Part shown: positions 15,890 through 42,900 of the stretch, piece after piece
Position numbering within the stretch: the first letter of the stretch is position 1
Layout: each line of letters begins with the position of its first letter
NCBI GenBank assembly: GCA_020891255.1
Contig: BQFW01000013.1
Span: 2,294,001-2,358,000, forward strand
Direction: 5' to 3'
Origin: Entomortierella parvispora E1425
Taxonomy: Eukaryota > Fungi > Mortierellomycota
Length of the DNA: 64,000 nucleotides
Position numbers and translations under genes: made by a program
Notes under the pieces: model-generated
The model's input: the letters and a program-made list of their open reading frames with translations, nothing else
Databases searched by the model: none
Told to the model about the DNA's origin: nothing

Positions 15890-18800
15890 CATTTCCATAA
15901 AATTCACGGTTCATTTTTGTTGAATGGATTTTTATGGACGGCCTATGAGGGCGTGTGTAACATAGTCAGGGCCATTGCCAATGGACCGTCAAAACCAATG
16001 AAATTTTGTTTTCGCCCCTTTTTATCCATTATGAGATGATGAGCCACAGTCCCCCCTGACGGTCTGGCATCGTCTTTGATCAACGACTGCCTGTCGAATC
16101 TCCGTACGTACTTCTCTCCTCCCTCCCTCCCTCCCCTCCCCTCTCCCTCCTCCCTCTCCTCCCTCTCTTCCCTTTCCTCTCACTCACTGTTTCTCTGTCG
16201 TATTTTTCATGTCTGCGTGTGTGAGAGCGTGTGTGCGCACGCGCATGTGTATTTTATTAAAAAAAAAAAAAAAAGGAAAAAAAAAAAAACTATGGTTGCT
16301 CTTTTGCTTTCACCTTTCCTTTTCCTTGCTCTTTTTCTTCTGAGCTTCCAAACCTCTTGGAAACCTTTTTGGGCAAAAGCTTGTAGTATGCTGCAATTGA
16401 GCAAGAGTTGCAATCTTCCTTCAGCATGTCCTGAAAGTCTTGAAGAGCTTGTGCAATCATAGCCATGTCAATTGGTGTGTTATCCGGGATGTAGCGCAAG
16501 ACCGATTGAACAATCGTCTTCTTGAATAAGTAGAGACCTGCAAACCCGTTTTTCCCATCAGGGTTAGCCGAATTCTTTTCACTGCGCCATAGATTTGAAT
16601 ACCATGAATCCATCGTCACGACTGAGGGGCTACCATTGACACCATAGAACCACTCTTGCCAAACCCCCTCTAGCGTGTTTGGCCGAGGGACCAACGTGCA
16701 CAAAGGCATGTGCCTGGGCATAGGAGGGTCAACCTCGCCTCTCTCTCTTCTGTAGTGCGCAATTACTACAGCCACAGCTTGGATTTTATCTTGAGTTTTG
16801 ACAGAATGGCCGCTGTCATCATGACAACGTGGATGGATAATGGAAGGAGGAGGAGCGACTAAGCTCGATTCTTCTACCCTCGATAATTGCAGGCTGAGAA
16901 TCGGGGCACCTGGGGCTTCCTGCTCTTTTGACAGCAGACCCAAACGAGGTAGAACGGACCCTTCAGTGATACTCAAGCCTCCTTGTTCTTGTTCTTGGGT
17001 TATAGAGGTCATCCGACCAGCAGCATCTGACAGAGAGGCCGCTAATGACTTCACTAGGGCATCAATCTTGTCATTCACCTTGCCCATACCTTGAACGACA
17101 CCCTCAAGGACATACTGATTACGCTGCTCTGCATGCAAGGCTCGGCGGTCCTGGTAGACTTGGAGCCTCTCAATGTTATCCGAGATCTTGGAGATCGCAG
17201 TGCTCATTGTTTGTTGTCGGGAAGTTTGCTGTGATATGAGGGCATTGGCGGCCTCCAGTTGCCGCTGAATAACAGGTGCCACGGACGTTAGGTTGCTAGG
17301 GCGAAGGGAAGTGTGGGCTAACGTTTCTGCCATCAACTTCTTAAAGGCCAAAAATTCCGGAGACCTGAATACTTCACGCTTGAAAATAGGGTGCCGGGAA
17401 GATTTGTTCTCGGCCAATAAAAAAGACGGCGGCGTCCTGCAGAATGACTTTCCGCAAGTGGGCAAGCAGACAAAGATGCCGTCGACGCGAGATTGCCTCA
17501 TCAGAGAGAACTTTCCGTGCAGCCCTTTTCTTGATTTTTTTTGATCTTAATATTTTCCTCTTGACGTCCGTAGAATATGCTCCGATCCAGCATGATGTTG
17601 TCGATGGTCTGGATCCAGAAAGGGTCGTAGTGCTTTTTGTCCTCAGGATTTGAGCATGCACGTTCAATGAATGGGAAGACCATGCGCTGTAGCTCGAGGT
17701 CTGGAATGACATTACGCTCCAGCCAAAAGTTTTCCGTACGGCCATTCTCAAATCCGGCCATTTGCAACGCCACAGATGCATCGACGCCGTCGAGGTAATG
17801 GGTGATGAGTCGGTTTGTCCCCCAGCCGCCGTGTTTCGATATATCTTCGTGCGTGGCTCCAGTCAGCCGCGCCAAAAAAGCACCCAGTCGTCTACTGAGA
17901 TGGGTTGCTTTGCCTTTGACACCAATGTTGAGATAATCCTGGACCTCGCGTGTCTGCTTGTACTGTGTGGCATATCGTATCTCTGATGTTCGTGTGGTGG
18001 ACTTTGACAACAAGTGATAGTTGACCCAGTCGTGATCTTCTACTCTAGGCGGAGGGGCAGCCGATGAGGAAGTAGGCTAGATAATTCAGATTAGAAAGGG
18101 GTAGAGCCTCACCCAGCTCATAAAATGTACGTCATAATCAAAAAGTTCAAACTTACCAACCAGTACTCAAGCAGATAAAAGGCTAGAGCACCGACAGGAC
18201 ACGCTTCCACGTCTGGGTTTCGTACCACGACATTATATCGGATCTTGCCATTATTGTTCATTTTTCCTTGTCTTGTCATCAAAACCACACCAAGGACGAA
18301 TTTTCTCTCCTGCTCCCGATCTTTCCGCACTGGACGTGCAACATTCTGGCCAAAGAGGTCGATCAATCTCATCCTGCGTGTGGTTTCACTGCGGCACATC
18401 ATAAAAAATCGAAGGGCGGCGTCAGCTCGATGGCGAAGACCAGTTATCACTCGTGTCCATTTGCTCTGTTCGCCCTGTATATTATGGTGCCAAAAGTGCA
18501 CCATTACCATCTTGACATTCTCCAAAGGGTCCTCCTCGACAAAGTTTGCTGAGCCTTGATCGGTATCTGTCGCTCTCTTCGTGACCGCCACTCTTCTTTC
18601 GTAACTCGTAATCAGGTCCCTCAGGTAATCCATCGGCTTTCTCTCGAGACACCTGAACATGACTTTGTTGTCTGGGTCCACACGTTGCTGACGGTAGAGT
18701 TCTCCGATGGCGGATGCGTGTAATTTTACCGTTGAGAGAGACGGTGCATTGGCCGGTAATCCCCTGTCGGAATGACATACATTCTCACCGAGGTCGTCAT

Positions 18801-20041: not shown

Positions 20042-23000
20042 TCCATAAAATTCACGGTTCATTTTTGTTGAATGGATTTTTATGGACGGCCTATGAGGGC
20101 GTGTGTAACATAGTCAGGGCCATTGCCAATGGACCGTCAAAACCAATGAAATTTTGTTTTCGCCCCTTTTTATCCATTATGAGATGATGAGCCACAGTCC
20201 CCCCTGACGGTCTGGCATCGTCTTTGATCAACGACTGCCTGTCGAATCTCCGTACGTACTTCTCTCCTCCCTCCCTCCCTCCCCTCCCCTCTCCCTCCTC
20301 CCTCTCCTCCCTCTCTTCCCTTTCCTCTCACTCACTGTTTCTCTGTCGTATTTTTCATGTCTGCGTGTGTGAGAGCGTGTGTGCGCACGCGCATGTGTAT
20401 TTTATTAAAAAAAAAAAAAAAAGGAAAAAAAAAAAACTATGGTTGCTCTTTTGCTTTCACCTTTCCTTTTCCTTGCTCTTTTTCTTCTGAGCTTCCAAAC
20501 CTCTTGGAAACCTTTTTGGGCAAAAGCTTGTAGTATGCTGCAATTGAGCAAGAGTTGCAATCTTCCTTCAGCATGTCCTGAAAGTCTTGAAGAGCTTGTG
20601 CAATCATAGCCATGTCAATTGGTGTGTTATCCGGGATGTAGCGCAAGACCGATTGAACAATCGTCTTCTTGAATAAGTAGAGACCTGCAAACCCGTTTTT
20701 CCCATCAGGGTTAGCCGAATTCTTTTCACTGCGCCATAGATTTGAATACCATGAATCCATCGTCACGACTGAGGGGCTACCATTGACACCATAGAACCAC
20801 TCTTGCCAAACCCCCTCTAGCGTGTTTGGCCGAGGGACCAACGTGCACAAAGGCATGTGCCTGGGCATAGGAGGGTCAACCTCGCCTCTCTCTCTTCTGT
20901 AGTGCGCAATTACTACAGCCACAGCTTGGATTTTATCTTGAGTTTTGACAGAATGGCCGCTGTCATCATGACAACGTGGATGGATAATGGAAGGAGGAGG
21001 AGCGACTAAGCTCGATTCTTCTACCCTCGATAATTGCAGGCTGAGAATCGGGGCACCTGGGGCTTCCTGCTCTTTTGACAGCAGACCCAAACGAGGTAGA
21101 ACGGACCCTTCAGTGATACTCAAGCCTCCTTGTTCTTGTTCTTGGGTTATAGAGGTCATCCGACCAGCAGCATCTGACAGAGAGGCCGCTAATGACTTCA
21201 CTAGGGCATCAATCTTGTCATTCACCTTGCCCATACCTTGAACGACACCCTCAAGGACATACTGATTACGCTGCTCTGCATGCAAGGCTCGGCGGTCCTG
21301 GTAGACTTGGAGCCTCTCAATGTTATCCGAGATCTTGGAGATCGCAGTGCTCATTGTTTGTTGTCGGGAAGTTTGCTGTGATATGAGGGCATTGGCGGCC
21401 TCCAGTTGCCGCTGAATAACAGGTGCCACGGACGTTAGGTTGCTAGGGCGAAGGGAAGTGTGGGCTAACGTTTCTGCCATCAACTTCTTAAAGGCCAAAA
21501 ATTCCGGAGACCTGAATACTTCACGCTTGAAAATAGGGTGCCGGGAAGATTTGTTCTCGGCCAATAAAAAGACGGCGGCGTCCTGCAGAATGACTTTCCG
21601 CAAGTGGGCAAGCAGACAAAGATGCCGTCGACGCGAGATTGCCTCATCAGAGAGAACTTTCCGTGCAGCCCTTTTCTTGATTTTTTTGATCTTAATATTT
21701 TCCTCTTGACGTCCGTAGAATATGCTCCGATCCAGCATGATGTTGTCGATGGTCTGGATCCAGAAAGGGTCGTAGTGCTTTTTGTCCTCAGGATTTGAGC
21801 ATGCACGTTCAATGAATGGGAAGACCATGCGCTGTAGCTCGAGGTCTGGAATGACATTACGCTCCAGCCAAAAGTTTTCCGTACGGCCATTCTCAAATCC
21901 GGCCATTTGCAACGCCACAGATGCATCGACGCCGTCGAGGTAATGGGTGATGAGTCGGTTTGTCCCCCAGCCGCCGTGTTTCGATATATCTTCGTGCGTG
22001 GCTCCAGTCAGCCGCGCCAAAAAAGCACCCAGTCGTCTACTGAGATGGGTTGCTTTGCCTTTGACACCAATGTTGAGATAATCCTGGACCTCGCGTGTCT
22101 GCTTGTACTGTGTGGCATATCGTATCTCTGATGTTCGTGTGGTGGACTTTGACAACAAGTGATAGTTGACCCAGTCGTGATCTTCTACTCTAGGCGGAGG
22201 GGCAGCCGATGAGGAAGTAGGCTAGATAATTCAGATTAGAAAGGGGTAGAGCCTCACCCAGCTCATAAAATGTACGTCATAATCAAAAAGTTCAAACTTA
22301 CCAACCAGTACTCAAGCAGATAAAAGGCTAGAGCACCGACAGGACACGCTTCCACGTCTGGGTTTCGTACCACGACATTATATCGGATCTTGCCATTATT
22401 GTTCATTTTTCCTTGTCTTGTCATCAAAACCACACCAAGGACGAATTTTCTCTCCTGCTCCCGATCTTTCCGCACTGGACGTGCAACATTCTGGCCAAAG
22501 AGGTCGATCAATCTCATCCTGCGTGTGGTTTCACTGCGGCACATCATAAAAAATCGAAGGGCGGCGTCAGCTCGATGGCGAAGACCAGTTATCACTCGTG
22601 TCCATTTGCTCTGTTCGCCCTGTATATTATGGTGCCAAAAGTGCACCATTACCATCTTGACATTCTCCAAAGGGTCCTCCTCGACAAAGTTTGCTGAGCC
22701 TTGATCGGTATCTGTCGCTCTCTTCGTGACCGCCACTCTTCTTTCGTAACTCGTAATCAGGTCCCTCAGGTAATCCATCGGCTTTCTCTCGAGACACCTG
22801 AACATGACTTTGTTGTCTGGGTCCACACGTTGCTGACGGTAGAGTTCTCCGATGGCGGATGCGTGTAATTTTACCGTTGAGAGAGACGGTGCATTGGCCG
22901 GTAATCCCCTGTCGGAATGACATACATTCTCACCGAGGTCGTCATTGACACTATCGCTGTCACTATCGTTGTCATCATCAGTGTCGTCGCTATCATGACC

Positions 23001-24186: not shown

Positions 24187-24625
24187 GCAAATCGATCTGG
24201 TTCTGACTCCGGCTTTTATGAAGTTCAGGGTGCCGCGACCCTGGTCCTCGCACAGCTGCCCTGCAAGATGTATGGCATTTATGTTAAATATAAGGCTTCT
24301 GCGGTAGCGTATGCCGATCAACCTCAAGCCTTCTGGACGGAGCGTCAGTACAACCCAAGCTTCAGCGAACTGGCGGCTATAGGACCGTCCTACTTAGGCA
24401 TTCAGGCAACCTCACTGCATCGGAGCGAGCCTTCAGTCAAGCATTATTCTTCCCCCTCCAAGGGACTCTATCTGTGTGTATCTTTCTTTATTGATCTCAC
24501 GTGACTCCAAAGAAAAAATTGCTCTGCAATAAAGGGATCTCTCGATGCATCTCTCAGATCTCCATCTTTCTTTTTCACGCGGCCGGACATTAATCATCCC
24601 CCGAAACTCGACTGATCCTGATCTA

Positions 24626-25534
24626 ATGTCCGATGCCACCACCCAATCTTCCCCCGACATTGCCACCTTGGCAGCTGCGGTCCTATCTCTTACCCAGAAA
24701 CTATCTGACCAAGATCGACTCCTCAAGGAGCTACAGGACCAAGCCACTGAGAGCGACATTCGTCCTGGACAAGTGGTCTACAAGAGTGACCGAGCAACCA
24801 CTCTCTTACAATACCCGGAACTTCAGAATCAGTACCCAGCAATCACACAAAAACACTTCTTCAACACTGTCCTCCCTGCAGGACATAACCTCTTTGACTG
24901 GAACGACTATCACTACACCGATGGTATGGTCTACAAAGCACCACCAGTCTTGGAACATCAGGGCGTCACCCTCCCAGAGTTGGCTCGCAAACATGAGCAG
25001 GACCTGGCCAAGATTCAGGGACACATGGCCAACTCCACGAGATTGTTCGACACACTCGTCGACGAAATTCTCACATATGAAATGGACGCAGACGAGCTCG
25101 CCAAGCACGTCATTTCATTTGTCAACACTGCCCGCATCTTGGTATCTAACGACGCCTCCAAGATCAGCCTCATGCGGAAGGACATCTATCTCCGCCATCT
25201 GGAACTCCCAACTTCAGAGCCCCAGGAGAATGCTATCCTCACTCTGGAAGACCTCGCCAAACGTAGAACGACTGTGGACCTCGTCAGCAAGACTTACACC
25301 AAGCCAAGCGTCAAGGAAAGCAAGAGACCCTTGCATAAGAAACCCGGGTTCAAGAAGAAGCAACCCGAGGACTCAGACAAGAAATCTACCCACGAGAAGT
25401 CAAAGGAGTCAACAAATAGCCGTGACGGTGGCGGCAGGAACAACCGCCCTTACAAGGCCAGAAAGTCGAGCAACTACGACGACAACAAGTCTGCAGGAGA
25501 CAAGGGAAACGGATCAGAGAAGGAGCGCCAGTAG
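24626..25534 (+). CDS. gag: DIRS Gag-like protein
   Basis: First ORF after the left ITR, with an N-terminal coiled coil, YKAPP..L...HEQDLAKIQ..MAN.TR..D, and a basic Lys/Asn/Ser-rich tail; similar to the other two gags here. Confidence 0.85.
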   Translation: MSDATTQSSPDIATLAAAVLSLTQKLSDQDRLLKELQDQATESDIRPGQVVYKSDRATTLLQYPELQNQYPAITQKHFFNTVLPAGHNLFDWNDYHYTDGMVYKAPPVLEHQGVTLPELARKHEQDLAKIQGHMANSTRLFDTLVDEILTYEMDADELAKHVISFVNTARILVSNDASKISLMRKDIYLRHLELPTSEPQENAILTLEDLAKRRTTVDLVSKTYTKPSVKESKRPLHKKPGFKKKQPEDSDKKSTHEKSKESTNSRDGGGRNNRPYKARKSSNYDDNKSAGDKGNGSEKERQ

Positions 25535-28442
25535 GAGCACGCCTTCTCCAATTCAAACGGGAATGGGAGGAGATGACAGATTCAACTTGGGTCAACAACA
25601 TTGTCAGCAAGGGGTACTCGATCGTCTTCAGCAAACCACCGCCAATGCGCCTCCCACCAATCCACGATCCCTACACCACACCAGCGGAGAAGGAGGAAAT
25701 AAACAAAGAGATCGTTTCTTTATTACAAAAAAGGGCCATAGAAGAATGCTCAGGCTGGGGATATTACAGCCGTCTATTCACAATACCCAAGAAGACAGGG
25801 GGCCTCCGCCCTGTCCTCAACCTTCGACCTCTCAACCAACACCTGAAGGCCCCACATTTCAAGATGGAGACGCTCACTCACATCTGCCAAATGTTGCGGC
25901 CGAAGGATTGGTTGACATCAATCGACTTAAGCGACGCCTTCCTCCACGTCGCCGTACAGCCGAAAAGTCGACGCTACCTACGCTTCCGATGGCACGGGAA
26001 GACATATCAGTTCAGGACCCTTCCATTCGGTCTCTCACTGTCCCCTTACGTCTTCACCAAGATCATACGACCCATCCTGCAGTGGGCACGCAAACAGGGG
26101 ATCCGCATTTCAGCATATTTAGACGACATATTAGTTGCCGCAACCAGCAGAGAAGAGTCAGAAAGACACACTCTCATGGTACGTCAGAAGCTGGAACGAC
26201 TGGGATTCCTCATTCAGAACGAGAAATCAATGCTTACGCCTTTGCAACAGATCAATCACCTGGGATTTCACATAGACACCGTCCAAATGTCACTGTCAGT
26301 CCCGGGGAACAAGATCCGAGACCTGAGGAGAGAAGCCAACAAGATGCTGCAGGCAGCAGCAGTCCCGCTGAAGAGATTGGCGTCCTTCATAGGGAGAGCG
26401 ATGTCCATGACAGTGGCCATCTTTCCAGCACGACTAAAGACGCGCCGACTCATCCAAGCTCAGAACTCAGCATTAGCAAGGAACTGCCCATGGACGGAGT
26501 CTGTCACACTGGACCACCAATCGAAAGAGGATCTTCAATGGTGGTGCAAAAACCTGTCGACATGGAATGGTCAGGGATTCCTCCCCCAGAGGTCAGAGAT
26601 CGATGTATTCACGGATGCATCTCAGGACGCATGGGGGATAGTCTACGAGGACGAGGAGATCTCGAAGACATGGACACAGGAGGAGCAACCGTATCACATC
26701 AATTACAAGGAATTGAAGGTGATATGGCATCTGATACACCTGCCGGACATGCGAGGCAGGACAATCCAGGTAATCTGCGACAATACGACGGCAATTGCGC
26801 AGATAAACAAGTTTGGAGGGACCAAATCAAAGCGATTGCTGGACCTAGCAACACAAATTTGGGACTATTGCATCAAGACGGGAACCCGACTCATGACAAC
26901 GTACGTACCGTCTCAGTTCAATCCAGCCGACTCACCATCGAGACGCATGACAGCACAGTTGGAGTGGTCGATCAACAACTCGTTCTATCGACAGCTAGAC
27001 TCGACCTGGGGACATCACTCAGTCGATCTATTCGCCACGGCAAAGAACGCGAAGACTCAACGCTACGTCTCCTGGATGCACGAGGAGACAGCGTGGAGAC
27101 AGGATGCGTTCAGCTTCAGTTGGAAGGACCTGGGCCGAGTCTACATCTGCCCACCGTGGTCACTCCTCAACCGAGTCCTGGAGAAGATCAGAACGGACAA
27201 GGTGCAGGCGACAGTGATCACACCACAGTGGCCTGCTATGATTTGGTACCCTACAATCCAGGCCATGTCAACACACAGCCCAATCCCAGTACCGAGGACA
27301 ATGGTACAACCCGCACCAGGAAACAGCCCACAGCCACTGGAGCGGAACCCCATGTGGCAGTTAACAGCGTGGAGCGTCGACGGCAGCAAGCTGTGACCAC
27401 AGGGGCCGACGCAGGAGTCATTCGCCGATTGTTTGACTCCAAATCCGCTCAGGAAAGGAACAAGAGCACATCGAGTCAACGAACATTCACGCAATGGATG
27501 CAGGAGAGAGGTCGACCACTAGAGGATACCTCACCTACGGACTTGATGAACTTCCTGAACTATGGAGTGGAGATTAGGGCTTGGAAGCCGCAAACGGCCC
27601 GAGCCTACTTGTCATCAGTACTCAAACTCTTCCCGAGGGACCGTCAGGAAGAGTGGCGAGCGGATGAAAATCTGTCAGATTTTCTAAAGGTCATTGGTGC
27701 ACACACACTCAAGCGGCTACGTCACGACGACGCGGATACGACACCTATCTTCATCGAGATCCTCAAGAAGGGTGAGAACAAGGGCCTAAACATTAGGCAC
27801 TTGACATCGAAGACATGCTTCTTGCTGGGACTGGTAGGACTCCTTCGACCGGACGACTTGGCTTGTATAGACACAAAGCAGTGCCGAATTCGAGATGGAG
27901 TGCTGGAATTGACCATCGTCTCTCCCAAGGAACGTCGAGATGGACAACGCATTATCAAGACCGTCTTGATACATCCGCACACAGATCCAATCTTTTGCCC
28001 GGTAGAAGTGTATCAGGAGTACCGTAGGCGTACTGAGAAACACGACGAACATGCAAGGCAGCAACACCCCAAGCTGGACAAGGAGTTGTTGGAGGTTGAA
28101 ATAATACCCCTAATCAGGGAGATCAGTTATGGCAAATCGCCTCTGGGAGCAGAGAGAATCTCCAAGTACCTTGCCGTCCTCCTGGATCTGATGCCCAGAG
28201 AGAAGGGGCAACCCCGCCCAAAGGTCAGGGCGCTGGGAGCTACGAACGCCCTCAAGAAAGGGGTTCCGTTGGAGGAAGTGACCGTTCAAGGGAACTGGTC
28301 ATCGCCTACCATGGTGGAGAACTACTATCGAATTTCAAGGACCCTCGTTAGCAACTTCACCAACACTCTTCTTCCCCGGCATCTGGATTCACAGATAGAG
28401 TCCCTTGGAGGGGGAAGAATAATGTCTAGCGTTGCCGAATGA
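24633..28442 (+). CDS. Long overprinted ORF (1269 aa) whose last ~340 aa are the DIRS tyrosine recombinase
   Basis: Stop-free from the AUG 7 nt after the gag AUG. The recombinase part (about 27395 onward) has LLRPDD (R), SPKE (K), CPV, PKVR, GNWS (W) and ENYY (Y). Confidence 0.85.
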   Translation: MPPPNLPPTLPPWQLRSYLLPRNYLTKIDSSRSYRTKPLRATFVLDKWSTRVTEQPLSYNTRNFRISTQQSHKNTSSTLSSLQDITSLTGTTITTPMVWSTKHHQSWNIRASPSQSWLANMSRTWPRFRDTWPTPRDCSTHSSTKFSHMKWTQTSSPSTSFHLSTLPASWYLTTPPRSASCGRTSISAIWNSQLQSPRRMLSSLWKTSPNVERLWTSSARLTPSQASRKARDPCIRNPGSRRSNPRTQTRNLPTRSQRSQQIAVTVAAGTTALTRPESRATTTTTSLQETRETDQRRSASRSTPSPIQTGMGGDDRFNLGQQHCQQGVLDRLQQTTANAPPTNPRSLHHTSGEGGNKQRDRFFITKKGHRRMLRLGILQPSIHNTQEDRGPPPCPQPSTSQPTPEGPTFQDGDAHSHLPNVAAEGLVDINRLKRRLPPRRRTAEKSTLPTLPMAREDISVQDPSIRSLTVPLRLHQDHTTHPAVGTQTGDPHFSIFRRHISCRNQQRRVRKTHSHGTSEAGTTGIPHSEREINAYAFATDQSPGISHRHRPNVTVSPGEQDPRPEERSQQDAAGSSSPAEEIGVLHRESDVHDSGHLSSTTKDAPTHPSSELSISKELPMDGVCHTGPPIERGSSMVVQKPVDMEWSGIPPPEVRDRCIHGCISGRMGDSLRGRGDLEDMDTGGATVSHQLQGIEGDMASDTPAGHARQDNPGNLRQYDGNCADKQVWRDQIKAIAGPSNTNLGLLHQDGNPTHDNVRTVSVQSSRLTIETHDSTVGVVDQQLVLSTARLDLGTSLSRSIRHGKEREDSTLRLLDARGDSVETGCVQLQLEGPGPSLHLPTVVTPQPSPGEDQNGQGAGDSDHTTVACYDLVPYNPGHVNTQPNPSTEDNGTTRTRKQPTATGAEPHVAVNSVERRRQQAVTTGADAGVIRRLFDSKSAQERNKSTSSQRTFTQWMQERGRPLEDTSPTDLMNFLNYGVEIRAWKPQTARAYLSSVLKLFPRDRQEEWRADENLSDFLKVIGAHTLKRLRHDDADTTPIFIEILKKGENKGLNIRHLTSKTCFLLGLVGLLRPDDLACIDTKQCRIRDGVLELTIVSPKERRDGQRIIKTVLIHPHTDPIFCPVEVYQEYRRRTEKHDEHARQQHPKLDKELLEVEIIPLIREISYGKSPLGAERISKYLAVLLDLMPREKGQPRPKVRALGATNALKKGVPLEEVTVQGNWSSPTMVENYYRISRTLVSNFTNTLLPRHLDSQIESLGGGRIMSSVAE
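25504..25548 (+). other. Candidate -1 ribosomal frameshift signal (G GGA AAC + 6-nt spacer + 7-bp stem)
   Basis: The heptamer 25504-25510 is in gag frame. GAGAAGG 25517-25523 pairs with CCTTCTC 25542-25548, the gag UAG lies in the loop, and the -1 frame is open into pol. Confidence 0.62.
25504..27396 (+). CDS. pol: DIRS Pol: reverse transcriptase, RNase H, DAM-like methyltransferase (no own AUG; -1 frame relative to gag)
   Basis: PVGARL..F...W, LRPVLNLR, IDLSDAF, LPFGL, AYLDD, FTDAS, HINYKEL, CDNTT, DLFAT, CPPW. Confidence 0.93.
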   Translation, partial: GKRIREGAPVGARLLQFKREWEEMTDSTWVNNIVSKGYSIVFSKPPPMRLPPIHDPYTTPAEKEEINKEIVSLLQKRAIEECSGWGYYSRLFTIPKKTGGLRPVLNLRPLNQHLKAPHFKMETLTHICQMLRPKDWLTSIDLSDAFLHVAVQPKSRRYLRFRWHGKTYQFRTLPFGLSLSPYVFTKIIRPILQWARKQGIRISAYLDDILVAATSREESERHTLMVRQKLERLGFLIQNEKSMLTPLQQINHLGFHIDTVQMSLSVPGNKIRDLRREANKMLQAAAVPLKRLASFIGRAMSMTVAIFPARLKTRRLIQAQNSALARNCPWTESVTLDHQSKEDLQWWCKNLSTWNGQGFLPQRSEIDVFTDASQDAWGIVYEDEEISKTWTQEEQPYHINYKELKVIWHLIHLPDMRGRTIQVICDNTTAIAQINKFGGTKSKRLLDLATQIWDYCIKTGTRLMTTYVPSQFNPADSPSRRMTAQLEWSINNSFYRQLDSTWGHHSVDLFATAKNAKTQRYVSWMHEETAWRQDAFSFSWKDLGRVYICPPWSLLNRVLEKIRTDKVQATVITPQWPAMIWYPTIQAMSTHSPIPVPRTMVQPAPGNSPQPLERNPMWQLTAWSVDGSKL

Positions 28443-29387
28443 AATGAAGGCTAAAGCAACATTTATTCGACACCGACAAGGGACTCTAGATGTCCCACCC
28501 GGCCCGCCCTAGGCATATCTTTGCGAGTAGATGGAGATCTGAGAGATGCATCGAGAGATCCCTTTATTGCAGAGCAATTTTTTCTTTGGAGTCACGTGAG
28601 ATCAATAAAGAAAGATACACACAGATAGAGTCCCTTGTCGGTGTCGAATAAATGTTGCTTTAGCCTTCATTTCATTCGGCAACGCTAGACAGGATTGATC
28701 CCCGACAAAAAAAGAGCATCCACTTAAGACAATAATTTCAACTCTATAATTTGTGCTCAGAGCTTTGCCCTTGTTATTCCAGAGATTGCAAAGATACGAA
28801 GGAAAGAAGAACTTGCAAGACTGGAGAGGGCACGCAGAGTACCTGTAGTTTGAAATGAACATACGATAATAAATATCTTCATTTGTTCCCTTTTTTTTTT
28901 TTTTTTTTTGAGGAGTGAGAGGCTGGGACCGAAGGGAAGTGACATCGTTGTTTTTGTTACCAACGATAGGAAGGAGCAAGGAGAGTACGACAGAGATGAA
29001 AACAAGGACCATGACAATGAAAAAAAGAACGCGCCACGGCAGGAAAAACAGCACGCTCGGCAGGAACGGAGAACATGCCACGGCGGGAAGGAGAACACGC
29101 CTGCTGGGCGGGAAAGAGAGCTCGCCTGGGCGGGCGTCACCAAATTCACGCCGCAGTGTGACACGGAAGTCGCCGCGGCGTGTGGCTTAGAACACGCCAC
29201 GCTCAGCGTGTTCCCAAACTTTCGGGTGAGTTCGCACAGTGTGAATTGAGCCTGGACACGGCTAAAATTTGGACTCGCAGTCTCTATGACAGCAAGAACC
29301 GCATTTTGGGGATTCGAACTACGTACATGTACTGCACATACCGACAAGGGAGTTGGAAAAAATTACAGCAAGTCTCAACTCTTATGT

Positions 29388-29492
29388 TTTGCCACCAACC
29401 TTTGCGCCTTGCCACCAACTCTTTCGCCTTGCTCGTGCTTTGCCACCAACTCTCATGCCTTGCCACCAACCTCTCGCGCCTTGCCACCAACC
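29388..29492 (+). repeat. Cluster of five TTGCCACCAAC motifs
   Basis: Five copies about 20-30 bp apart; similar clusters at 36474-36524 and 54583-54631. Confidence 0.75.
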
Positions 29493-31506: not shown

Positions 31507-32167
31507 ACAATTGCAGAATTACTGGTTTAGTCTCACAAGGTCAGAGGCTCTAAAGCAGCAACGTCACAGAAGTGATCTACTGCAACGGCCGACTCAGAGC
31601 ACAGATCAAGCCAGATTTGCCAAACGCGGGCCGTGTCCAAATTTAGGTTGCGATCGACTCGCCCCATAGGCTGAAGCAAATGGAAAGGGAACTCGCGTCA
31701 AAAATAGCAGCTGGAAACAAAGAACAAAGGAAACAATGGAACAAAGACAGAAACAAGGAACAACTGCCGCCTAGAGGCCCCACTTCAATGATCAACACAC
31801 ACCTCGTAGGCACATATAAAGAAAAGCACAAGAAAAATAAAGAAAATCAAGCGCCTTTGGACACAATTTTTGCCCTCTTTTGGTCGAGGGGTCTCCCCGA
31901 AGGCCGTTCTACATTCTGCGAGGAGCAATCTCATATTGTTAAACGTGATCCATCTTTATTTTAGCGCCTCCAAAAAAAAGAGAAAAAAGAAATTTTTCGA
32001 GGATCATGAACCTCACCATCGCAGCTAAGGATGACCCTACGCGAAAGAGCAAACAAGGGCGGGTGGGAGGGAACAATATGAGATTGCTCCTCGCAGAATG
32101 TAGAATGGCCTTCGGGGAGACCCCTCGACCAAAAGAGGGCATTCTACTTCGGAGCAATCACATATTG

Positions 32168-35100
32168 TTACTCCAAAGAGACAGGACCAGTAAGAGTGAC
32201 TTTAGTCAAATTCGTCGTGGTCCGCTTGGAAAGCCGATAAAAGGCATCGAACGTCGCTGAGTGTGCCCAAAACCCTTGGGCCTGCACTTCGTCGACGGAT
32301 GCACCGTGCTCTACTGCCAGAGATGAGCCAATGGAGCGACCGGATGGCATTGAGCTACCTTCTTGACGAGGGATCCGAGAGGAGACATTCTTGATATGGC
32401 GGCTAATGGTCTGAGAACCGACCACCCTGTCCACCATACGAATGTGTCGAATCAACGGTAAGTATTCCCGATTGATGCGAGGATGCTTCACGGGTTTGAC
32501 TGACGAACCCTCTAGGCGTGCAACATAAGACTTGTACGCCTCGACAGGACAAAAAAGGGGGTTGTCGTGGGGATGAATGAAGACAGACTTGATGATTGGA
32601 CAATTCTGTCTTTTCTCCTTGGGGCCCAGGACTTGGAGCTCCAAAGCCCCCGAGCAGAGGACCGGGCTGTGAGCCAAGTCTACGCGGGCAATATCTGATG
32701 GGCGCATGAAACCACAGACCGCCAACAACCAACAAAGTTTGGGCACCAATAGGTCGTCCTTGAGGCCATCGTTCGGACCCAAATTGGTGAAGAACTCGAG
32801 GACTGGAGAAACATCGACAGGGCTATTAGTGTGGTCACGGATTTGATCGCTGCTCAAATGCAAAAAGAACTCCTTGAAAAAGGGGTTCGCCCAGATCAGA
32901 TCTCGATTAGAGAGCATGTTGAGGATGCTCGATCTATGGGCATTGACTGTGCCCAGAGACCATTTCTTGGTCGTGATCTGCTCCGAAAGGTAGTTCAAGA
33001 CCTGGAAGGGGGACGGGGCTTGAGCATCGAGGCCCTGGTCCGAGCAATACGCGATCCAGGCCCTCTGGGGGGAGCTGTAGGACTTTGCTCGAGAGCGAGC
33101 GAGAGCTGACTGTGAAAAAATGGACACAGTAGCCGGTGACGCGCCTTGACCCTCGATGCGTTGGCGTTGAGCTTCCACGCCGCCAACGTCCAGGGCAGAG
33201 GATTCCCGTCGGGAAAAAAGGCGTGTCCTTCTTCCTTTGGGAGAATGAGCGGTGGACCGACCTGTAGGTCCAGGAGGGTCGGGTACCAGATCGCCGAGTG
33301 CCACAGGGGAGAGAAGCTGAGATCCTTGACTAGGGTGCCTGAGACTCTCTCCCGCTGCATCTTGGACAGAGTGTGCGATATCATCGCCCACGGGGGGCAG
33401 GCGAAGATCCTCTCGTGCTTTCATGGGATCGAGAGAGCGTCCGTCGCCACTGCCTGGGGATCCCATTGCCACGTCGCGAATCTCGGGAGCTGGTGGTTCT
33501 TCCGACTCGCAAAGAGATCGATGGAGTGGGGACCCAACTGCTGATCGATCCGCTGGAAGGAGGTGCGACTGAGTGACCACTCCGTCTGGAGCCACAGGTT
33601 GCGCGATGGGATGTCCGCAGGGTTGTCCTCGGACTGGATGAATGTCGTCATGATTCGGGTTCCTGTCGCCAGACAGTAATCCCAAATGAGACGAGCCAGA
33701 TCCACCAGGGGGGATGAACGTGTTCCCCCGAACTTGGTGATGTAGGACAAAGTGGTTGTCGAGTCCGAATGAACTCGTACTACCTTGCCCTTGATGTCTG
33801 GATCCTGAATCGCTCTCCAGACTGTGTGCAGTTCCCGCCAGTTGATAGACTGGAGTCTTTCCTTTGTCGACCACGGTCCTGATAAGGTCTCGGTCACTGT
33901 CACAATGCCCCAACCCCAGTCGCTCGCATCCGTGAAGAGCTCCACGTCCGGGTGTTGCGGAAGGAAAGACTGTCCCGTCCAGCTCATAAGGTGGTCGCAC
34001 CACCACTCCAGGTCCTCTCTGGCTCCCGGAGTTAGGGTGGTGGAGTCGCTCCATGTTTTCCCTGAAGCGAGAGTAGTGTCCTTGCAGGACAAGAGGCGGC
34101 GGGTCTGCAAACGAGCGGGCAGGACCGCTAAAACCGCGGCTTGGGCCTTGCCCAAAAAAGAGGCCAGTCGACGCAGAGGGACCAGCGTTGACTGGAACAG
34201 GTGTAGAGCTTCCCGACGAAGATCCCGCACCTTGTCCTTGGGAAGAGACAGGGTCATCTTGCGGGTGTTGATGAAGAAACCGAGATGTTTGATAACCCGA
34301 GTCGGTTTGAAAACGGACTTGTCGAGGTTGATCCGATAACCCAGGCTCTCTAGCTTCGCTCGGACCTGTTGGGCCTGGGCCCGAGCCAAGGTCTTGGAAG
34401 ACGCTGCCAAGAGGATGTCGTCCAAGTACGGGGAGAGACGGATGCCCACCGATCTCGCCCATCTGATGACTGGGCGAAGGATCTTCGTAAAGACCCATGG
34501 GCTTAGGGACAAGCCAAAAGGGAGGACTCGGAACTGAAAACGACGGCCACCCCAATCGAACTGAAGGAGCTTGCGGGACGCCTGATGGACGAGAATGTGA
34601 AGAAACGCGTCCGTTAGATCGATGGATGTCAACCAATCCTTGCGCCGAATCATACGGCAAACTTGTTGTACCGACTCCATCTTGAAGCGGTGGCGTGGAA
34701 GATGGGAGTTTACCTGTCGTAGATTTAAGACTGGGCGAAGTTTGCCATTCGATTTGGCTATCACGAAAAGGGGGGACCGATGTCCCTCCTCCGTTGGGGA
34801 GACTTCCTCGATTGCTTGTTTGGTGAGGAGTTGAAGGACCTCCTCGTCCAAGGCTGCTTGGGCCTCGAGAGACAGTGGGTACGAGACTGTCTTTGTCGCT
34901 GACACTGGTGGGATCGAGGTCAGGGGAATCTTGAACCCCTTCTCGATCGTCGAGCGAACCCAGCGCTCGTCCGTGAGACGCCGCCAGGCTGACCGGAAAC
35001 GTGCTAACCGCCCTCCTATTGCGTCCGGCTCTGAGGAGGAGGGCGAGAAAAACCCGACTTGTCTTTGCCCTTAGGGCCTGAAGACGCAGATCTGGTCGTG

Positions 35101-35944
35101 CCCGATGAAACCGGCTCCGAAGATTTTTCAGGCTGAGCCTGAGGTTGGGACGACGCGGAACGAGTTGTCTTAGCTTCGGGGGAACGACCACGGGGCTTTT
35201 TCTTAGGCCTGGCACGGCCTTTGCGGGATGAACCCGGCTCTGAGGACTTGGCTTGAGGCTGCCAAATGCGAGTATTTGTCTCCATGACTGCCAAGAGGTC
35301 GGCCATGACCTTGGTCTCCACCAAGTAAGGCGCAGAGGCGCTGGACACCTGGGGAGGGTTCCTGACCTTGGGGTTGACCCATCGGATGATGTTATCGAGT
35401 CGGGTTTGCGAGATCGCAGAAGCCTGACCGGACGGGAGGCGGCGGATGCCGGCGAGATGTTCCATGACCGTGAGGAAAGGAAGACGCTCCTGGGGCACCC
35501 GGGACGTACGTTCCATGAAATAATCCAAGTACTTGGTTGTTTGGGACAGTTGGAACTGAATGTCGGACAGCTGCTTATCGTGCGCTTTAAGCTCTGCTGG
35601 GAGGGAGAGTCCCTCTGGTGGCACGGGGGTGGAATAGTCGTGGCCAACGATGGCAGGGCTTCTTGCTGCAAAAGCTGCTTTTTCAGAGGGGGCCAACGGC
35701 GCCAAACAAAATGGAGTTTTGAAAAGACAACCAGAACCGAACGTAGTGAGGTCGATGAAATTCTGGTTGGGAACGTATCCGAGAGTAGACTGGAGGGGAA
35801 AGAGCTCGGGATCGAAGTCACCAGTTGACTTCTGGTGGATGCCAATGAGTGCGGCCAACTGCTGTTCCAGCTGGGCCATCCTGACATCAAGGGGAACGGG
35901 ATCGGCGGCCATCTGAGCCGAAGGTCCGTCAGAGGAGTGTCCAT
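32168..35944 (-). CDS. Long overprinted ORF (1258 aa from the second AUG) ending in the tyrosine recombinase
   Basis: ATG TCT A ATG at the gag start. The frame is stop-free to 32168, with FMRPSD, GPKE, FCPV, PSGR, GFW and DAFY. Confidence 0.85.
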   Translation of the reverse strand: MDTPLTDLRLRWPPIPFPLMSGWPSWNSSWPHSLASTRSQLVTSIPSSFPSSLLSDTFPTRISSTSLRSVLVVFSKLHFVWRRWPPLKKQLLQQEALPSLATTIPPPCHQRDSPSQQSLKRTISSCPTFSSNCPKQPSTWIISWNVRPGCPRSVFLSSRSWNISPASAASRPVRLLRSRKPDSITSSDGSTPRSGTLPRCPAPLRLTWWRPRSWPTSWQSWRQILAFGSLKPSPQSRVHPAKAVPGLRKSPVVVPPKLRQLVPRRPNLRLSLKNLRSRFHRARPDLRLQALRAKTSRVFLALLLRAGRNRRAVSTFPVSLAASHGRALGSLDDREGVQDSPDLDPTSVSDKDSLVPTVSRGPSSLGRGGPSTPHQTSNRGSLPNGGGTSVPPFRDSQIEWQTSPSLKSTTGKLPSSTPPLQDGVGTTSLPYDSAQGLVDIHRSNGRVSSHSRPSGVPQAPSVRLGWPSFSVPSPPFWLVPKPMGLYEDPSPSHQMGEIGGHPSLPVLGRHPLGSVFQDLGSGPGPTGPSEAREPGLSDQPRQVRFQTDSGYQTSRFLHQHPQDDPVSSQGQGAGSSSGSSTPVPVNAGPSASTGLFFGQGPSRGFSGPARSFADPPPLVLQGHYSRFRENMERLHHPNSGSQRGPGVVVRPPYELDGTVFPSATPGRGALHGCERLGLGHCDSDRDLIRTVVDKGKTPVYQLAGTAHSLESDSGSRHQGQGSTSSFGLDNHFVLHHQVRGNTFIPPGGSGSSHLGLLSGDRNPNHDDIHPVRGQPCGHPIAQPVAPDGVVTQSHLLPADRSAVGSPLHRSLCESEEPPAPEIRDVAMGSPGSGDGRSLDPMKAREDLRLPPVGDDIAHSVQDAAGESLRHPSQGSQLLSPVALGDLVPDPPGPTGRSTAHSPKGRRTRLFSRRESSALDVGGVEAQRQRIEGQGASPATVSIFSQSALARSRAKSYSSPQRAWIAYCSDQGLDAQAPSPFQVLNYLSEQITTKKWSLGTVNAHRSSILNMLSNRDLIWANPFFKEFFLHLSSDQIRDHTNSPVDVSPVLEFFTNLGPNDGLKDDLLVPKLCWLLAVCGFMRPSDIARVDLAHSPVLCSGALELQVLGPKEKRQNCPIIKSVFIHPHDNPLFCPVEAYKSYVARLEGSSVKPVKHPRINREYLPLIRHIRMVDRVVGSQTISRHIKNVSSRIPRQEGSSMPSGRSIGSSLAVEHGASVDEVQAQGFWAHSATFDAFYRLSKRTTTNLTKVTLTGPVSLE
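32995..35055 (-). pseudogene. pol: DIRS Pol (RT, RNase H, MTase) with TGG->TGA at 33421-33423
   Basis: IGGRL..F..AW, LRPVLNLR, IDLTDAF, LPFGL, PYLDD, FTDAS, DLFAS; DALSIP*KHERIFACPPW continues in the same frame past the stop. Confidence 0.88.
35009..35055 (-). other. Candidate -1 frameshift signal (G GGU UUU + 9-bp stem)
   Basis: The heptamer 35055-35049 is in gag frame. CGCCCTCCT (35045-35037) pairs with AGGAGGGCG (35017-35009), and the -1 frame is open into IGGRL. Confidence 0.6.
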
Positions 35945-35951
35945 TAGACAT
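35016..35951 (-). CDS. gag: DIRS Gag-like protein
   Basis: RMAQLEQQL coiled coil, YSTPVPP...HDKQLSDIQFQLSQTTKYLDYF, and a basic tail. Confidence 0.85.
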   Translation of the reverse strand: MSNGHSSDGPSAQMAADPVPLDVRMAQLEQQLAALIGIHQKSTGDFDPELFPLQSTLGYVPNQNFIDLTTFGSGCLFKTPFCLAPLAPSEKAAFAARSPAIVGHDYSTPVPPEGLSLPAELKAHDKQLSDIQFQLSQTTKYLDYFMERTSRVPQERLPFLTVMEHLAGIRRLPSGQASAISQTRLDNIIRWVNPKVRNPPQVSSASAPYLVETKVMADLLAVMETNTRIWQPQAKSSEPGSSRKGRARPKKKPRGRSPEAKTTRSASSQPQAQPEKSSEPVSSGTTRSASSGPKGKDKSGFSRPPPQSRTQ

Positions 35952-36907
35952 AAGTGAAACAGTGTAGGAATGAAAACGCGGAGGGAATCCAGCGAAAAGA
36001 TGGTGAGGTTCATGATCCTCGAAAAATTTCTTTTTCTCTTTTTTTTGGAGGCGCTAAAATAAAGATGGATCACGTTTAACAATATGAGATTGCTCCGAAG
36101 TAGAATAGTCGAAAACCTTGTCTTCCATTGTAGTTCTTCTCGAGCCGCTACCAAAAAAAAAAAAAAAAAAAAAAAAAGTTGGAGGGAGCGAGGACAGATT
36201 TTTTAGCGGTCAACAATGCCAATTCTGGTCGCTCCTTTTCTAGCATCACCCCAGAATGGAGGGTCTGCGCAACCACAACGCGACTAGCGGTGACCGAGTC
36301 ATAGCTTGTGTCCATGCACAGTCATCCCATTCTGTTTCTGTCCTTTCCTTTCTTCCGGCCACTAGTTCATTTTCGTTCTATTACAAAAACCAGCTTTTTC
36401 TTCTCCATTAAAATTTGTCTCTATGGGGTCCTTACAAGAATCACAGAGCACAGCTCCATCAAAATATGTGGCTTGCCACCAAATGTCGCGTCTCTTGCCA
36501 CCAAAAGCGCGTCTTGCCACCAACTGTCGCGTCTCCTGACGCCAGAAAAACGCGCTCAGAACAAAACCCAACAATTGAGGCGAGGAGACAAAGCGTAGGT
36601 AGAGATGTTATGAAGAAAGAAGATGATGATCTACACCACCAACTCCCTTAGATTGAACTATGCATGTGCGCCAATCTTTGAGGGTCAACGCCGCAATGCT
36701 GCATTCAAGTCACTCCTGTCCTCAACACCAGAGTTCCCCCTTTACTGGAAAGACGCGTTTGCGCGTTTGCGCAACAGCACCGCGACTTTTGGGCGACTTT
36801 TTTTGTGTTTCGTGTCCACACACATTCATGCCTTTCTCCTTTCTTCCGTTCATTCGTTATTCCTTTCCCTTCCATGTCAAAAAGTAGATGTCCCGCTGAA
36901 AATCGGT

Positions 36908-39981: not shown

Positions 39982-42900
39982 ATGACGCCTTCTGAACACG
40001 AGGCTTTGGAGAAGGCAAAGGATCGTATACAATCTGCTCGAGAAGCTAAACTCACGGTTCCGATGTACTACTGGAGAGCAGTACATGCCCTTAAAAAGAT
40101 CGACAAAAAGAAGGTTGGCGCCGATGCCTTGACTGGCAAGGTCGATGCACTTCGAGAGCTCGCTGAGGTGCTGGATCACTCGGGAGAAACGGGCAAGGCC
40201 GTCGAGTGCAGACAGAAAGCAGATGCCTTGATGTAAGCACCCTTATTCTCGTCAACATCTGATGGGTGTTTGAATGACTCTAAATTGAACCACAATCCAC
40301 GTTAGCCGAGAATTAGGCGAGAACAAGAGGTTTCGTGTATCCACCGCTTCACTGTCTTTGACTGCACCGGTGATTACTCAGGAAGAAGTCGAGACAAAGG
40401 TTGCCTGTATGGTCTCTTTAGAGGGTATGTCTTTATTGTATACTAGCACCAACCCCGTTTTGATCTTTATTAATGTTGTCTTCGCACCTTTTTTATTCAA
40501 AGCCTCTGCCACATGCGCTGCCAACATCTCCTCCACCCCTCAACCGACACCTCCGCCAACCGCTCAAACAATCATCTCTATATCAGTGGCTACCAGTATC
40601 CAGGAATTTACGACGTTCTTCACCAAGGATGTAAATCCTGTACCTATTCATTGTACGCTACCTGGTCCGGATGAGCAATTACAGAGCACCTATCAACTTG
40701 TCTACGGTCTCCAGCTCTTACAGGATTCAGTTCATGAGAAGGATCTTTCTCCTGAAGCTCTCCAATGGCGTCACAGCACTCGAAATAACTTGGATGAGAA
40801 GGATCGCCTGCAGACCATAGCTGTTCAGATTGTCCAGACATTCAGAAGTAATGCTACCAAGGATGCTGCTGCGGTGGCTGAGGTTGTCCAGCTGGCCCCG
40901 GTGCTCGACAGCGAGTATTCCTGGCTCCTCCTCACATCCTTCACCGACGCTATCTGCCAGTCACAGCATTTGCATGTGCACCTAGTGGGAGGGCTGGTCA
41001 ACGTGATGCAAGGAGCAGCTCATGGATCCATCAGCTCAAACGACCTTGTGGTCGTCCTTCAGTCCCTTTTCAAGAAACTCCAGTCGACTCACCCAGAGAG
41101 CACTCGAGATCGACATCACCTGTTGCTTGCAATTTCACAGGTTCTGGATGCAATGGCAGATGCTGATATCGGAAGTCTTGATCGCGACGCTCTTCATGGG
41201 CCATTGAAGGATCTTCTTCAAGGGTTAGAGTCAAGCAAAGACCCCTATTTGACATTCCAAGCCGAGTATGCCACGCAGGCGCTGTTGAACGTTCCAGATG
41301 ACGAGACTGTCCTGAAGGCAGGATTTCGACGATTATGGTCCGGCTTGAAGGTTGTAGCAGGCTTTGCCAACATCTTGGATCCAACAGCGATAAAGGACTC
41401 ACTCGAGGCTCTAGAGAATCTATACGAATCTGGCAATGGAAGCATCAGGCTGCTCAAAGACCTCCATAAAGCGATCAGGAACAATGACCATCCGACATTC
41501 TCTATGAAGAAGGGTCTCAGGTTCAAGAAGGCTTGGTATGACGCCCTTCGCAGAGCGGAAGTATGTATCAAGGCTGGCGGGCTCGTGGAATTCAGAGATC
41601 TGGTCACTACCGCGTCATACCGACACCAATTCGAATTTCAATGGGGAATTTGCCAGCTACTCGGACGATTGGCGGCTGATACTCAATGGGATCTAGAAGC
41701 ACGGAAGGAAGCAGTTGTATTCCTTGGGGAGCTCTACAAGGATTCTGAACTTTGGAATCGGCAGGAAGGAGTTGACCAGGTCATTTTTGATATCCTCACC
41801 AATGTGACTGCCAACTATGGAGCCAACTTTGAAGGTATATCGATCTTATATTACTACACCCAGGTTGCAACCTCTGGGAGTAAGCTACGAAGAATCCTAT
41901 TCCTAACGTTCTTTTTTTTTGGTATTCACTTTTATAAAAATATAAACTAGGCGCCACGTCTTTGCTGAAGGAGATGAGGAAACAGAGCCCAGACTTGAAG
42001 TCATACGTCAATCTACAGTCGCCACTTTGGAACAATTTCCGGCCTTCAGACTCAACTGGCCACACCACTGCAAAGTTCACACTGCTGAAAACTGTCCAGA
42101 TCCAGTACCCTTGGAGACCTCGTCTTTATGGCATCCACAAAGCTCTCAAGGCGTACCACGCACCAGAACTCGTCATCCGCAGAGTTTCGGGAGACACGCT
42201 GGATCTGGAGACATGCTTTGTCAACCTAGCAATTGTCGAAGCACCGGCACATCGGCAAAAGGAAAAAGAGGATCTCAAAGAGCAGGCAGCAATCTTTCAT
42301 CGGCTACAAAGCTTCGAGAGGATTGAAAACACCAACACGGATGCACTGATCCCTTTGGAGCAACTCTTCAACAAGCACAAGCTACTAGAACGCCAAAGCA
42401 ATGAGGGTGAAGACATTCCTAAAAGGATTTTGGTGCAAGGGCGAGCAGGAATTGGTAAAACAACACTTTGCAAGAAGCTAGTCCATGCCCACCAAAATGG
42501 ACTGTGGAGGGATCTGTTTGATGTCGTACTGTGGATTCCATTGCGCAACCTCAGAGGATTTACAGGCACCACTCTAGAATCGCTGTTTCGTGATAAGATT
42601 TTTATCGGCCAGGATCGTGTCCAGCGTCAAGAGGCGTTGGCGGAAGCTCTTGTGACCTGTGCTGAAAAGGGAAAGGTCCTTTTCATCTTGGACGGCATGG
42701 ACGAGATTGTGGCCGATACGGAGAGCGAGGAGCGCCAGACTTTTAGAAGGTTCTTAATGACCCTCCTTGGACAAGAATATGTCGTCGTCACTTCGAGACC
42801 TTCCGGTGTGGAGAGCTCACTATTACAATCAACGGATCTGGAACTTGAGACTGTCGGGTTCAGTCAGCAGAATATCCAAGACTTTGTGGTCAAGGTACTT

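Follow-up and report, generated by a model that had tools for sequence, protein, structure and literature searches.

The 64,000-nucleotide (nt) window of Entomortierella parvispora E1425 analyzed here (GenBank assembly GCA_020891255.1, contig BQFW01000013.1, forward-strand positions 2,294,001–2,358,000; coordinates below count from the first base of the window) contains two DIRS1-like elements, E1 (24443–28693, forward strand) and E2 (31871–36106, reverse strand), in both of which a long third reading frame, overprinted on gag and pol, is free of stop codons and leads into a tyrosine recombinase. The ends of E1 are set where its copies L096–L100 diverge (about 24443 and 28693; lineages and copies are designated by L numbers throughout). 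Its left and right inverted terminal repeats (24459–24567, inverted repeat I1, and 28529–28637, from the same inverted-repeat analysis) are 100% complementary, and an internal complementary region (28390–28493, inverted repeats I2 and I3) pairs with both termini and overlaps the 3′ end of the long open reading frame (ORF). E2, delimited by inverted repeats I1, I2, and I4 and by tblastn, belongs to a divergent family with a pol ~44% identical to that of E1 (tblastn) and has the same layout of inverted terminal repeats and internal complementary region. Within E1 pol, Pfam detects RVT_1 (1.3e-27) and, below the cut-off and in the correct order, Dam (1.5e-5) and RT_RNaseH (0.003); relatives carry PF00078 and PF05869, and no rve or protease family is found in any ORF by Pfam scan. 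On domain content, recombinase, repeats, and ORF overlap, E1 and E2 are DIRS1-like tyrosine-recombinase retrotransposons, sharing with other elements of this type gag, reverse transcriptase (RT)/RNase H/methyltransferase, tyrosine recombinase, inverted terminal repeats, and internal complementary region.

In E1, gag (302 amino acids, 24626–25534) starts in the weak context ctaAUGu, and the pol frame (RT, RNase H, and Dam-like methyltransferase; 25426–27396) opens inside the 3′ end of gag. The long ORF (24633–28442, 1269 codons) combines a leader of ~921 codons overprinted on gag and pol with a non-overlapped tail encoding the tyrosine recombinase domain (27399–28442; alignment and fold search). 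Its frame, hereafter the third frame, is +1 relative to gag and −1 relative to pol, and pol is −1 relative to gag. The third frame of E1 is open at 24627–28442 and is closed directly upstream by a TAA at 24624–24626, so that 24633 is its first possible AUG. In E2, gag (311 amino acids, 35016–35951) starts in the context cuuAUGu, the long +1-frame ORF (32168–35944) has 1258 codons from the ATG at +7 in a frame open from 36202, and the pol frame (33160–35070, with homology to ~33160) is interrupted by an in-frame TGA at 33423–33421, past which ~87 codons of pol homology remain; gag and the long frame are intact. E2 therefore looks like a recently damaged or inactivated copy, and its description in the original prediction as one of two full elements does not hold, whereas the following structural statements do: both gags begin with ATG TCN N ATG (24626/24633 and 35951/35944), the +1 frames have the predicted coordinates and lengths and end in the recombinase, and the frame relations of gag, pol, and the third frame are the same in both elements.

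The architecture belongs to an element that has been active recently. E1 represents a young family: five near-identical copies (L096–L100), two of them on one contig, are present in E. parvispora GCA_020891255.1; their terminal repeats are identical, and three of the five are intact in all three frames. The 1-nt insertions found in copies lie at the equivalents of 25962 (L096) and 28409 (L099). The exact E1 gag protein is annotated in NCBI on four contigs. NCBI gene models for E1 comprise gag (302 amino acids) and a third-frame gene of 793 amino acids that shares its stop with the recombinase, leaving pol uncalled, so that the present reading bears on annotation: existing models give gag and a partial third-frame gene, and omit pol.

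The openness of the third frame is far beyond chance. In synonymous-codon shuffles (n = 2000) that preserve the protein and the element's own codon usage, the numbers of third-frame stops expected were 5.9 in E1 gag, 12.9 in E1 pol, 2.9 in E2 gag, and 16.1 in E2 pol, or ~19 per element, against none observed in gag or pol of either element. Zero stops were reached in 0 of 2000 shuffles for E1 gag, E1 pol, and E2 pol, and in 34 of 2000 for E2 gag. The shuffling that the original prediction had proposed as a check thus shows that stop-free third frames are not common by chance.

Relatives were then compared after being picked on pol similarity alone (by protein search, contig look-ups, and one metagenome scan), which means that the sampling could not favor long third frames. 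Sixteen lineages have a pol that is ~50% or more identical to that of E1, and all of them keep the third frame open throughout gag, pol, and the recombinase, a length of 1213–1350 codons. Over the 15 lineages analyzed for stop counts, pol contains 0 third-frame stops (254 expected) and gag contains 3 (60.6 expected), all of which lie between the gag ATG and the third-frame ATG. A search for stops in other intact copies, also foreseen in the original prediction, found none past the third-frame ATG in this clade; L025, which at first appeared to be an intact copy with third-frame stops, was rejected as such, being a copy with a frameshift indel within gag and a third frame open on both sides of it. 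Gag proteins of the clade lineages are only ~21% identical, which argues that openness has been kept by selection and not simply inherited with the sequence, and for openness that extends across gag, only translation entering the third frame at its 5′ end explains such selection. That the third frame is selected to be translatable from its 5′ end is strongly supported by this sequence comparison.

The same counts bear on the possibility that the open frame has no function and results from base composition or codon usage (little T, with an excess of A over T). The elements do have a positive AT skew, and pol codons end in T less often than in any other base, their third positions doubling as the first positions of third-frame codons. 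However, shuffles with each lineage's own codon usage expect 13–26 stops in pol and 2–7 in gag, and none reaches zero for pol; stops are about as frequent as usual in the other sense frame and in all antisense frames of E1 and E2; and depletion of T at positions where stops would begin is the outcome expected of selection against stops. The shuffles therefore reject this explanation, to which practically no weight is given.

The position of the start codons is informative about how ribosomes might enter the third frame. The gag ATG is fixed by the N-terminus M-S-[D/N/H], which is conserved across lineages, and the first third-frame ATG follows it by 7–58 nt in every lineage of the clade: at +7 in E1, E2, L001, L008–12, and L035/36; at +10 in L025; at +13 in L019; at +16 in L027 and L029; at +19 in L003/L020 and L031; at +22 in L032; at +25 in L002/L017 and L026; at +43 in L038; at +55 in L006/L021/L047; and at +58 in L034. 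A conserved AUG at +7, as originally predicted from E1 and E2, is hence not a feature of the clade: this spacing is the commonest, occurring in 5 of 16 lineages, and the others range from +10 to +58. What is general is proximity (Fisher combined p ~5e-5, relative to the spacing of third-frame ATGs elsewhere in each gag). Fungal AUG contexts usually favor A at −3, where a pyrimidine is weak; a pyrimidine occupies −3 at 12 of 15 gag AUGs. At third-frame AUGs that are not at +7, a purine is present at −3 in 10 of 10 cases, often as ACAAUG, against a background of 0.55 for other third-frame ATGs. This layout fits leaky or competitive scanning. Two arguments considered here were set aside. The regularity that the next out-of-frame ATG always falls in the third frame was dropped, as pol-frame ATGs in gag are rare by composition (10 versus 104), and the ends of ~4.2-kb contigs are unusable as transcript ends because assemblies break in terminal repeats.

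A known precedent for closely paired start codons is turnip yellow mosaic virus (TYMV), in which p69 and p206 are translated from AUGs 7 nt apart and for which competition between AUGs during oscillating scanning has been proposed (PMC6294492). In yeast, annotated AUGs meet competition from out-of-frame AUGs that lie no more than ~17 nt away (PMC9743702), so that AUG competition is documented at spacings below ~15–17 nt in both systems (PMC6294492; PMC9743702). E1 and TYMV share two out-of-frame AUGs 7 nt apart, two long overlapping ORFs, and a single capped RNA. They are not homologous, and they differ in that both TYMV proteins are functional, whereas the overprinted part described here looks like an unconstrained spacer; moreover, the 7-nt spacing occurs in only 5 of 16 lineages, and those at 19–58 nt would need ordinary leaky scanning. 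AUGs no more than ~15 nt apart that head two long ORFs are found in the +7 lineages, L025 (+10), and L019 (+13); for the ten lineages at 16–58 nt, only ordinary leaky scanning would apply.

The tail of the third frame, its C-terminal ~340 residues, contains invariant R150, K177, H223, R277, W300, and Y310 in the lineage alignment. Its AlphaFold2 model (pLDDT 82) matches Cre, XerA, Tn1549 integrase, and lambda integrase in Foldseek over the full length (E ~1e-7, probability 1.00), and on this modeled fold the tail is a Cre-like tyrosine recombinase. The assignment depends on the fold search because sequence-only methods are weak here: Pfam Phage_integrase falls below threshold for the tail, a PDB sequence profile gives weak Cre matches (E 0.03), and Pfam on the whole long ORF gives no match. 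In E1 and E2 there is no Met before the conserved N-terminal residues of the domain; the first Met of the E1 tail comes after conserved Q27 and W33. A 2A-like NPGP peptide was considered where the leader meets the recombinase and was rejected: E1 has only NPGH, and other lineages have nothing.

The boundary between pol and recombinase bears on a termination–reinitiation mechanism, in which ribosomes that finish Gag-Pol terminate at the end of pol and initiate again at an overlapping or adjacent third-frame AUG to make a free recombinase of ~325 amino acids, the long frame being incidental or otherwise used. A third-frame ATG overlaps the pol stop or lies within 6 nt of it (ATGA, TAATG, TAGNNATG) in L001, L019, L020, L021, L027, L029, and L031, a rough enrichment over the density of ATGs in that frame, and in L001 and L021 the conserved G-A-D with which the recombinase domain starts comes immediately after this Met. 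Sites of stop–start reinitiation have this pattern. However, such an ATG is missing from E1, E2, L026, L034, and L038, and the nearest third-frame ATGs after the pol stop of E1 (+102) and E2 (+78) both lie within the conserved N-terminal domain. Reinitiation also gives no reason for ~2.8 kb of stop-free sequence upstream, which is seen even in the ATG-bearing lineages. As the general route to recombinase, it is considered unlikely.

The overprinted leader (~920 amino acids) is rich in Ser, Arg, Pro, and Thr, a composition that had been correctly described from the E1 and E2 sequences. Its amino-acid sequence is poorly conserved, with 19–36% identity to E1 in other lineages as against 45–70% for pol. 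At four-fold sites of conserved pol residues, third-base identity is 0.30, compared with 0.28 in the non-overlapped part of the recombinase, and in sliding windows synonymous identity is ~0.35–0.51 in overlapped and 0.32–0.46 in non-overlapped sequence; identity at synonymous sites of gag, like that of pol, does not differ from the value for the non-overlapped recombinase part. The reduced synonymous variation that marks a functional overprinted protein was not found under the overlap, and localized constraint within the leader was rejected because the sliding windows of synonymous identity show no peak. AlphaFold2 gives the leader a pLDDT of 32 over 910 residues with no secondary structure, at an alignment depth like that for the recombinase, and the leader is predicted to be fully disordered. 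Absence of stop codons is the sole detectable constraint on it, and it would appear to serve as a conduit for translating ribosomes instead of forming a domain. The suggestion that the leader packages the enzyme finds no counterpart in these data: there is no amino-acid constraint and no predicted fold, and nothing points to packaging.

An unconstrained leader is also what would be expected if only the absence of stops mattered, as when the recombinase is made from a spliced or subgenomic RNA and the third frame is kept open for a reason at the level of RNA, such as avoidance of nonsense-mediated decay. Near-start out-of-frame AUGs in yeast do capture ribosomes and lower mRNA levels by nonsense-mediated decay (PMC9743702). 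Selection could, however, simply remove the nearby AUG; instead, every lineage retains a third-frame AUG near that of gag, mostly with a strong context, and the third frame runs unbroken into a recombinase that has no start of its own in E1 and E2. This explanation is judged improbable, to about the same degree as reinitiation.

The pol frame is most likely entered from gag by −1 frameshifting. Pol overlaps the end of gag in all lineages, and the conserved pol motif VGGRL starts at the gag stop, upstream of any pol ATG; in E1, the motif is VGARL and lies upstream of the first pol ATG (25573). A slippery heptamer in gag phase is present as G GGA AAC in E1 (25504–25510), L001, L002/L017, and L003/L020, and as G GGU UUU in E2 (35049–35055, reverse strand, followed by a hairpin) and L035; in nine lineages, only a non-canonical NNU UUU CAC motif is found in the overlap. 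In E1, the hairpin GAGAAGG … CCUUCUC (25517–25548) begins 6 nt 3′ of the heptamer and has the gag stop in its loop. All heptamer-bearing clade-A lineages that were folded (E1, E2, L001, L002, L003, L058, and L067) have a hairpin 3–7 nt 3′ of the heptamer, with the gag stop in the loop. The stems differ, being GAGAAGG/CCUUCUC in E1, GAGGGA/UCCCUC in L003, and CGCCCUCC/GGAGGGCG in E2, so that the position of the hairpin is kept despite sequence change. A phased heptamer followed by a hairpin is the standard −1 frameshift signal, which points to production of pol as Gag-Pol. As in retroviruses and long terminal repeat (LTR) retrotransposons, the signal consists of X XXY YYZ in gag phase, a spacer, and a hairpin ahead of a pol without its own start; unlike in those systems, it here covers pol only and the third frame is additional. 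No description of a frameshift signal in DIRS elements was found in published accounts of these elements. Reinitiation after the gag stop was also considered; the first ATG there is in the third frame in 12 of 15 lineages, and it is not counted as a signal, the ATGs deriving from two conserved pol Trp codons that follow an A-ending codon and occurring at about the background rate.

A second −1 frameshift toward the 3′ end of pol, giving a Gag-Pol-recombinase fusion, would agree with the recombinase being −1 relative to pol in all lineages and with the good support for gag-to-pol frameshifting in these elements. Yet the last 200 nt of pol contain no conserved phased slippery heptamer (one occurs in L006 only), and a second frameshift needs a short overlap only, leaving openness over all of pol and gag unexplained. 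Such a fusion is regarded as very unlikely, more so than either reinitiation or a separate RNA.

The observations are best accommodated by a scheme in which a single full-length mRNA would be read in all three frames, and which we hold to be correct with a probability of roughly 60%. Most ribosomes would start at the weak-context gag AUG and make Gag; a few per cent of these ribosomes would slip by −1 at the phased heptamer and hairpin to make Gag-Pol (RT, RNase H, and methyltransferase). A separate fraction of scanning ribosomes would start, by leaky scanning or AUG competition, at the third-frame AUG located 7 nt downstream in E1 and E2, pass through ~920 codons overprinted on gag and pol, and go on to translate the recombinase domain. 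Translation from the 5′ AUG is suggested by the open frame and the start-codon layout, and the ratio of recombinase to Gag would be determined by which start codon is chosen. Leaky scanning at the paired AUGs, proposed in the original prediction, is plausible: the open frame, the arrangement of the AUGs, and a recombinase without its own Met favor it.

Several points weigh against this scheme. Translation of the third frame is argued from sequence. The weak gag context is not significant relative to a pyrimidine-rich local background, and the fall of the next out-of-frame ATG in the third frame is largely a compositional effect. Extra ATGs are present upstream in the terminal repeat, at 24545 in the gag frame in E1 and, in a strong context, at 36013 in the third frame in E2, also inside the terminal repeat; whether the 7-nt pair comes first on the mRNA consequently depends on where transcription starts, and if the upstream ATGs are transcribed, the order of start codons departs from the simple model. 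A recombinase with a 920-amino-acid disordered N-terminal extension, in an element that has no protease, would be biochemically odd. Finally, a third-frame ATG lies within 6 nt of the pol stop in 7 of 15 lineages, and these may also make free recombinase by stop–start coupling.

The layout changes in more distant relatives. At 39–41% pol identity, the third frame opens just upstream of the pol frame (L048–L051) or in the 3′ end of gag (L014/15). At 31–36%, gag shares its frame with the third frame, from which it is separated by one stop, and pol lies in the +1 frame. Metagenome contigs with this layout are L065, L066, L073–L081, L083–L085, and L088–L092, and the separating stop is TGA in 16 of 20 and TAG in 4 of 20, often with C as the next base. 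The arrangement suggests stop-codon readthrough into the overprinted frame, for which readthrough Gag fusions such as Gag-Pol of murine leukemia virus, with a single stop between the two parts, offer an analogue. It is absent from E1 and E2, and suggests that the way into the shared overprinted frame differs among DIRS clades. The third frame is generally open over all or most of pol (in the 31–36% group, from 130–360 nt inside pol), in agreement with the long ORF overlap already published, whereas openness spanning gag is found, among the relatives surveyed, only in the clade whose pol is ~50% or more identical to that of E1. It is tentatively proposed, at somewhat less than even odds, that in DIRS1-like elements in general an unconstrained stop-free conduit over pol feeds the recombinase, with clade-specific entries: a second AUG near the gag AUG in Mortierellomycotina, and readthrough of the gag stop in the distant clade.

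Overlap between recombinase and pol is itself long known. It was noted as long in all five fungal DIRS elements examined by Piednoel et al. (2011, PMC3266345), among them RoDIRS1, MciDIRS1, and PblDIRS1; ORF II of Dictyostelium DIRS-1 overlaps ORF III (PMC3950715; PMC5633606); and reviews describe the overlap in DIRS elements as frequent and extensive (PMC6681497; PMC9210276; PMC3783388). In DIRS1-like elements including those described here, the recombinase ORF reaches far upstream over pol, and the catalytic domain is its non-overlapping 3′ end. The difference lies at the 5′ end: ORF II of DIRS-1 begins near the 3′ end of gag, whereas the third frame here covers all of gag and begins 7–58 nt after the gag AUG. 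The recombinase/pol overlap is not new (PMC3266345; PMC3950715); only the reach of the frame across gag and the pairing of the AUGs appear to be undescribed. No account of an overlap covering gag was found in the DIRS literature, although earlier mention by Goodwin and Poulter (2001, 2005) is possible; paired start codons, a three-frame scheme, and an expression mechanism for the overlap were likewise not found there, in a search outside which the Goodwin and Poulter papers fell.

The recombinase/pol overlap has been on record since the first DIRS-1 sequence, with no expression mechanism proposed in the literature found, and the present scheme would turn an old descriptive oddity of DIRS elements into a testable mechanism. 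If the scheme is true, few overlapping ORFs known from eukaryotic elements would be as long as the conduit of ~920 codons, and all three frames of one mRNA would be used, by means of three different mechanisms. Confirmation would provide a striking case of selection for translatability alone, possibly with one of the longest ORFs kept open for that reason only, and an example of a eukaryotic mobile element in which leaky scanning and frameshifting bring all three frames into use. The clade amounts to a clean natural experiment, with ~2.8 kb open against hundreds of expected stops, a sequence otherwise free to drift, and a start codon beside that of gag.

Two further DIRS relics are present in the window. 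A truncated one (4828–5836, reverse strand) comprises gag and the start of pol. The original prediction ascribed to it a long open +1 frame over gag, and this stands (open at 5829–5053, with an ATG at 5763), with the qualification that the ORF initiated by this ATG (5763–5053) belongs to the +1 frame; the frame that in fact encodes gag is open at 5836–5216 and has its first ATG not before 5395. The other (45812–47315, reverse strand) retains pol in its C-terminal third and, after it, a recombinase region that is frameshifted.

Several other features lie around the elements. Two 692-amino-acid ORFs on the reverse strand (8738–10816 and 54799–56877) are 96% identical, contain a P-loop-like GRSGSGKT, have no Pfam match, and may belong to a repeated unit. 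NLR-like genes with NACHT and HEAT/ARM domains, and tandem ARM/HEAT ORFs, occupy 3–2501 (forward), 59626–63897 (reverse), and 40358–45180 (forward); they belong to a large Mortierellaceae family with matches also in the endosymbionts Glomeribacter and Mycoavidus. The reverse-strand ORFs 16290–17501 and 20437–22158 both contain GCR1_C, and the second also contains NDC10_II, which together we take to be the domain pair of Crypton-type tyrosine-recombinase DNA transposons; GCR1_C/NDC10_II-like genes also adjoin the E1 copies L098 and L099. Short arrays of CTTGCCACCAA are found only at 29408–29490 and 36472–36523, with 6 exact copies where chance would give 0.03, and each array flanks a DIRS element (E1 or E2) at a distance of a few hundred bases.

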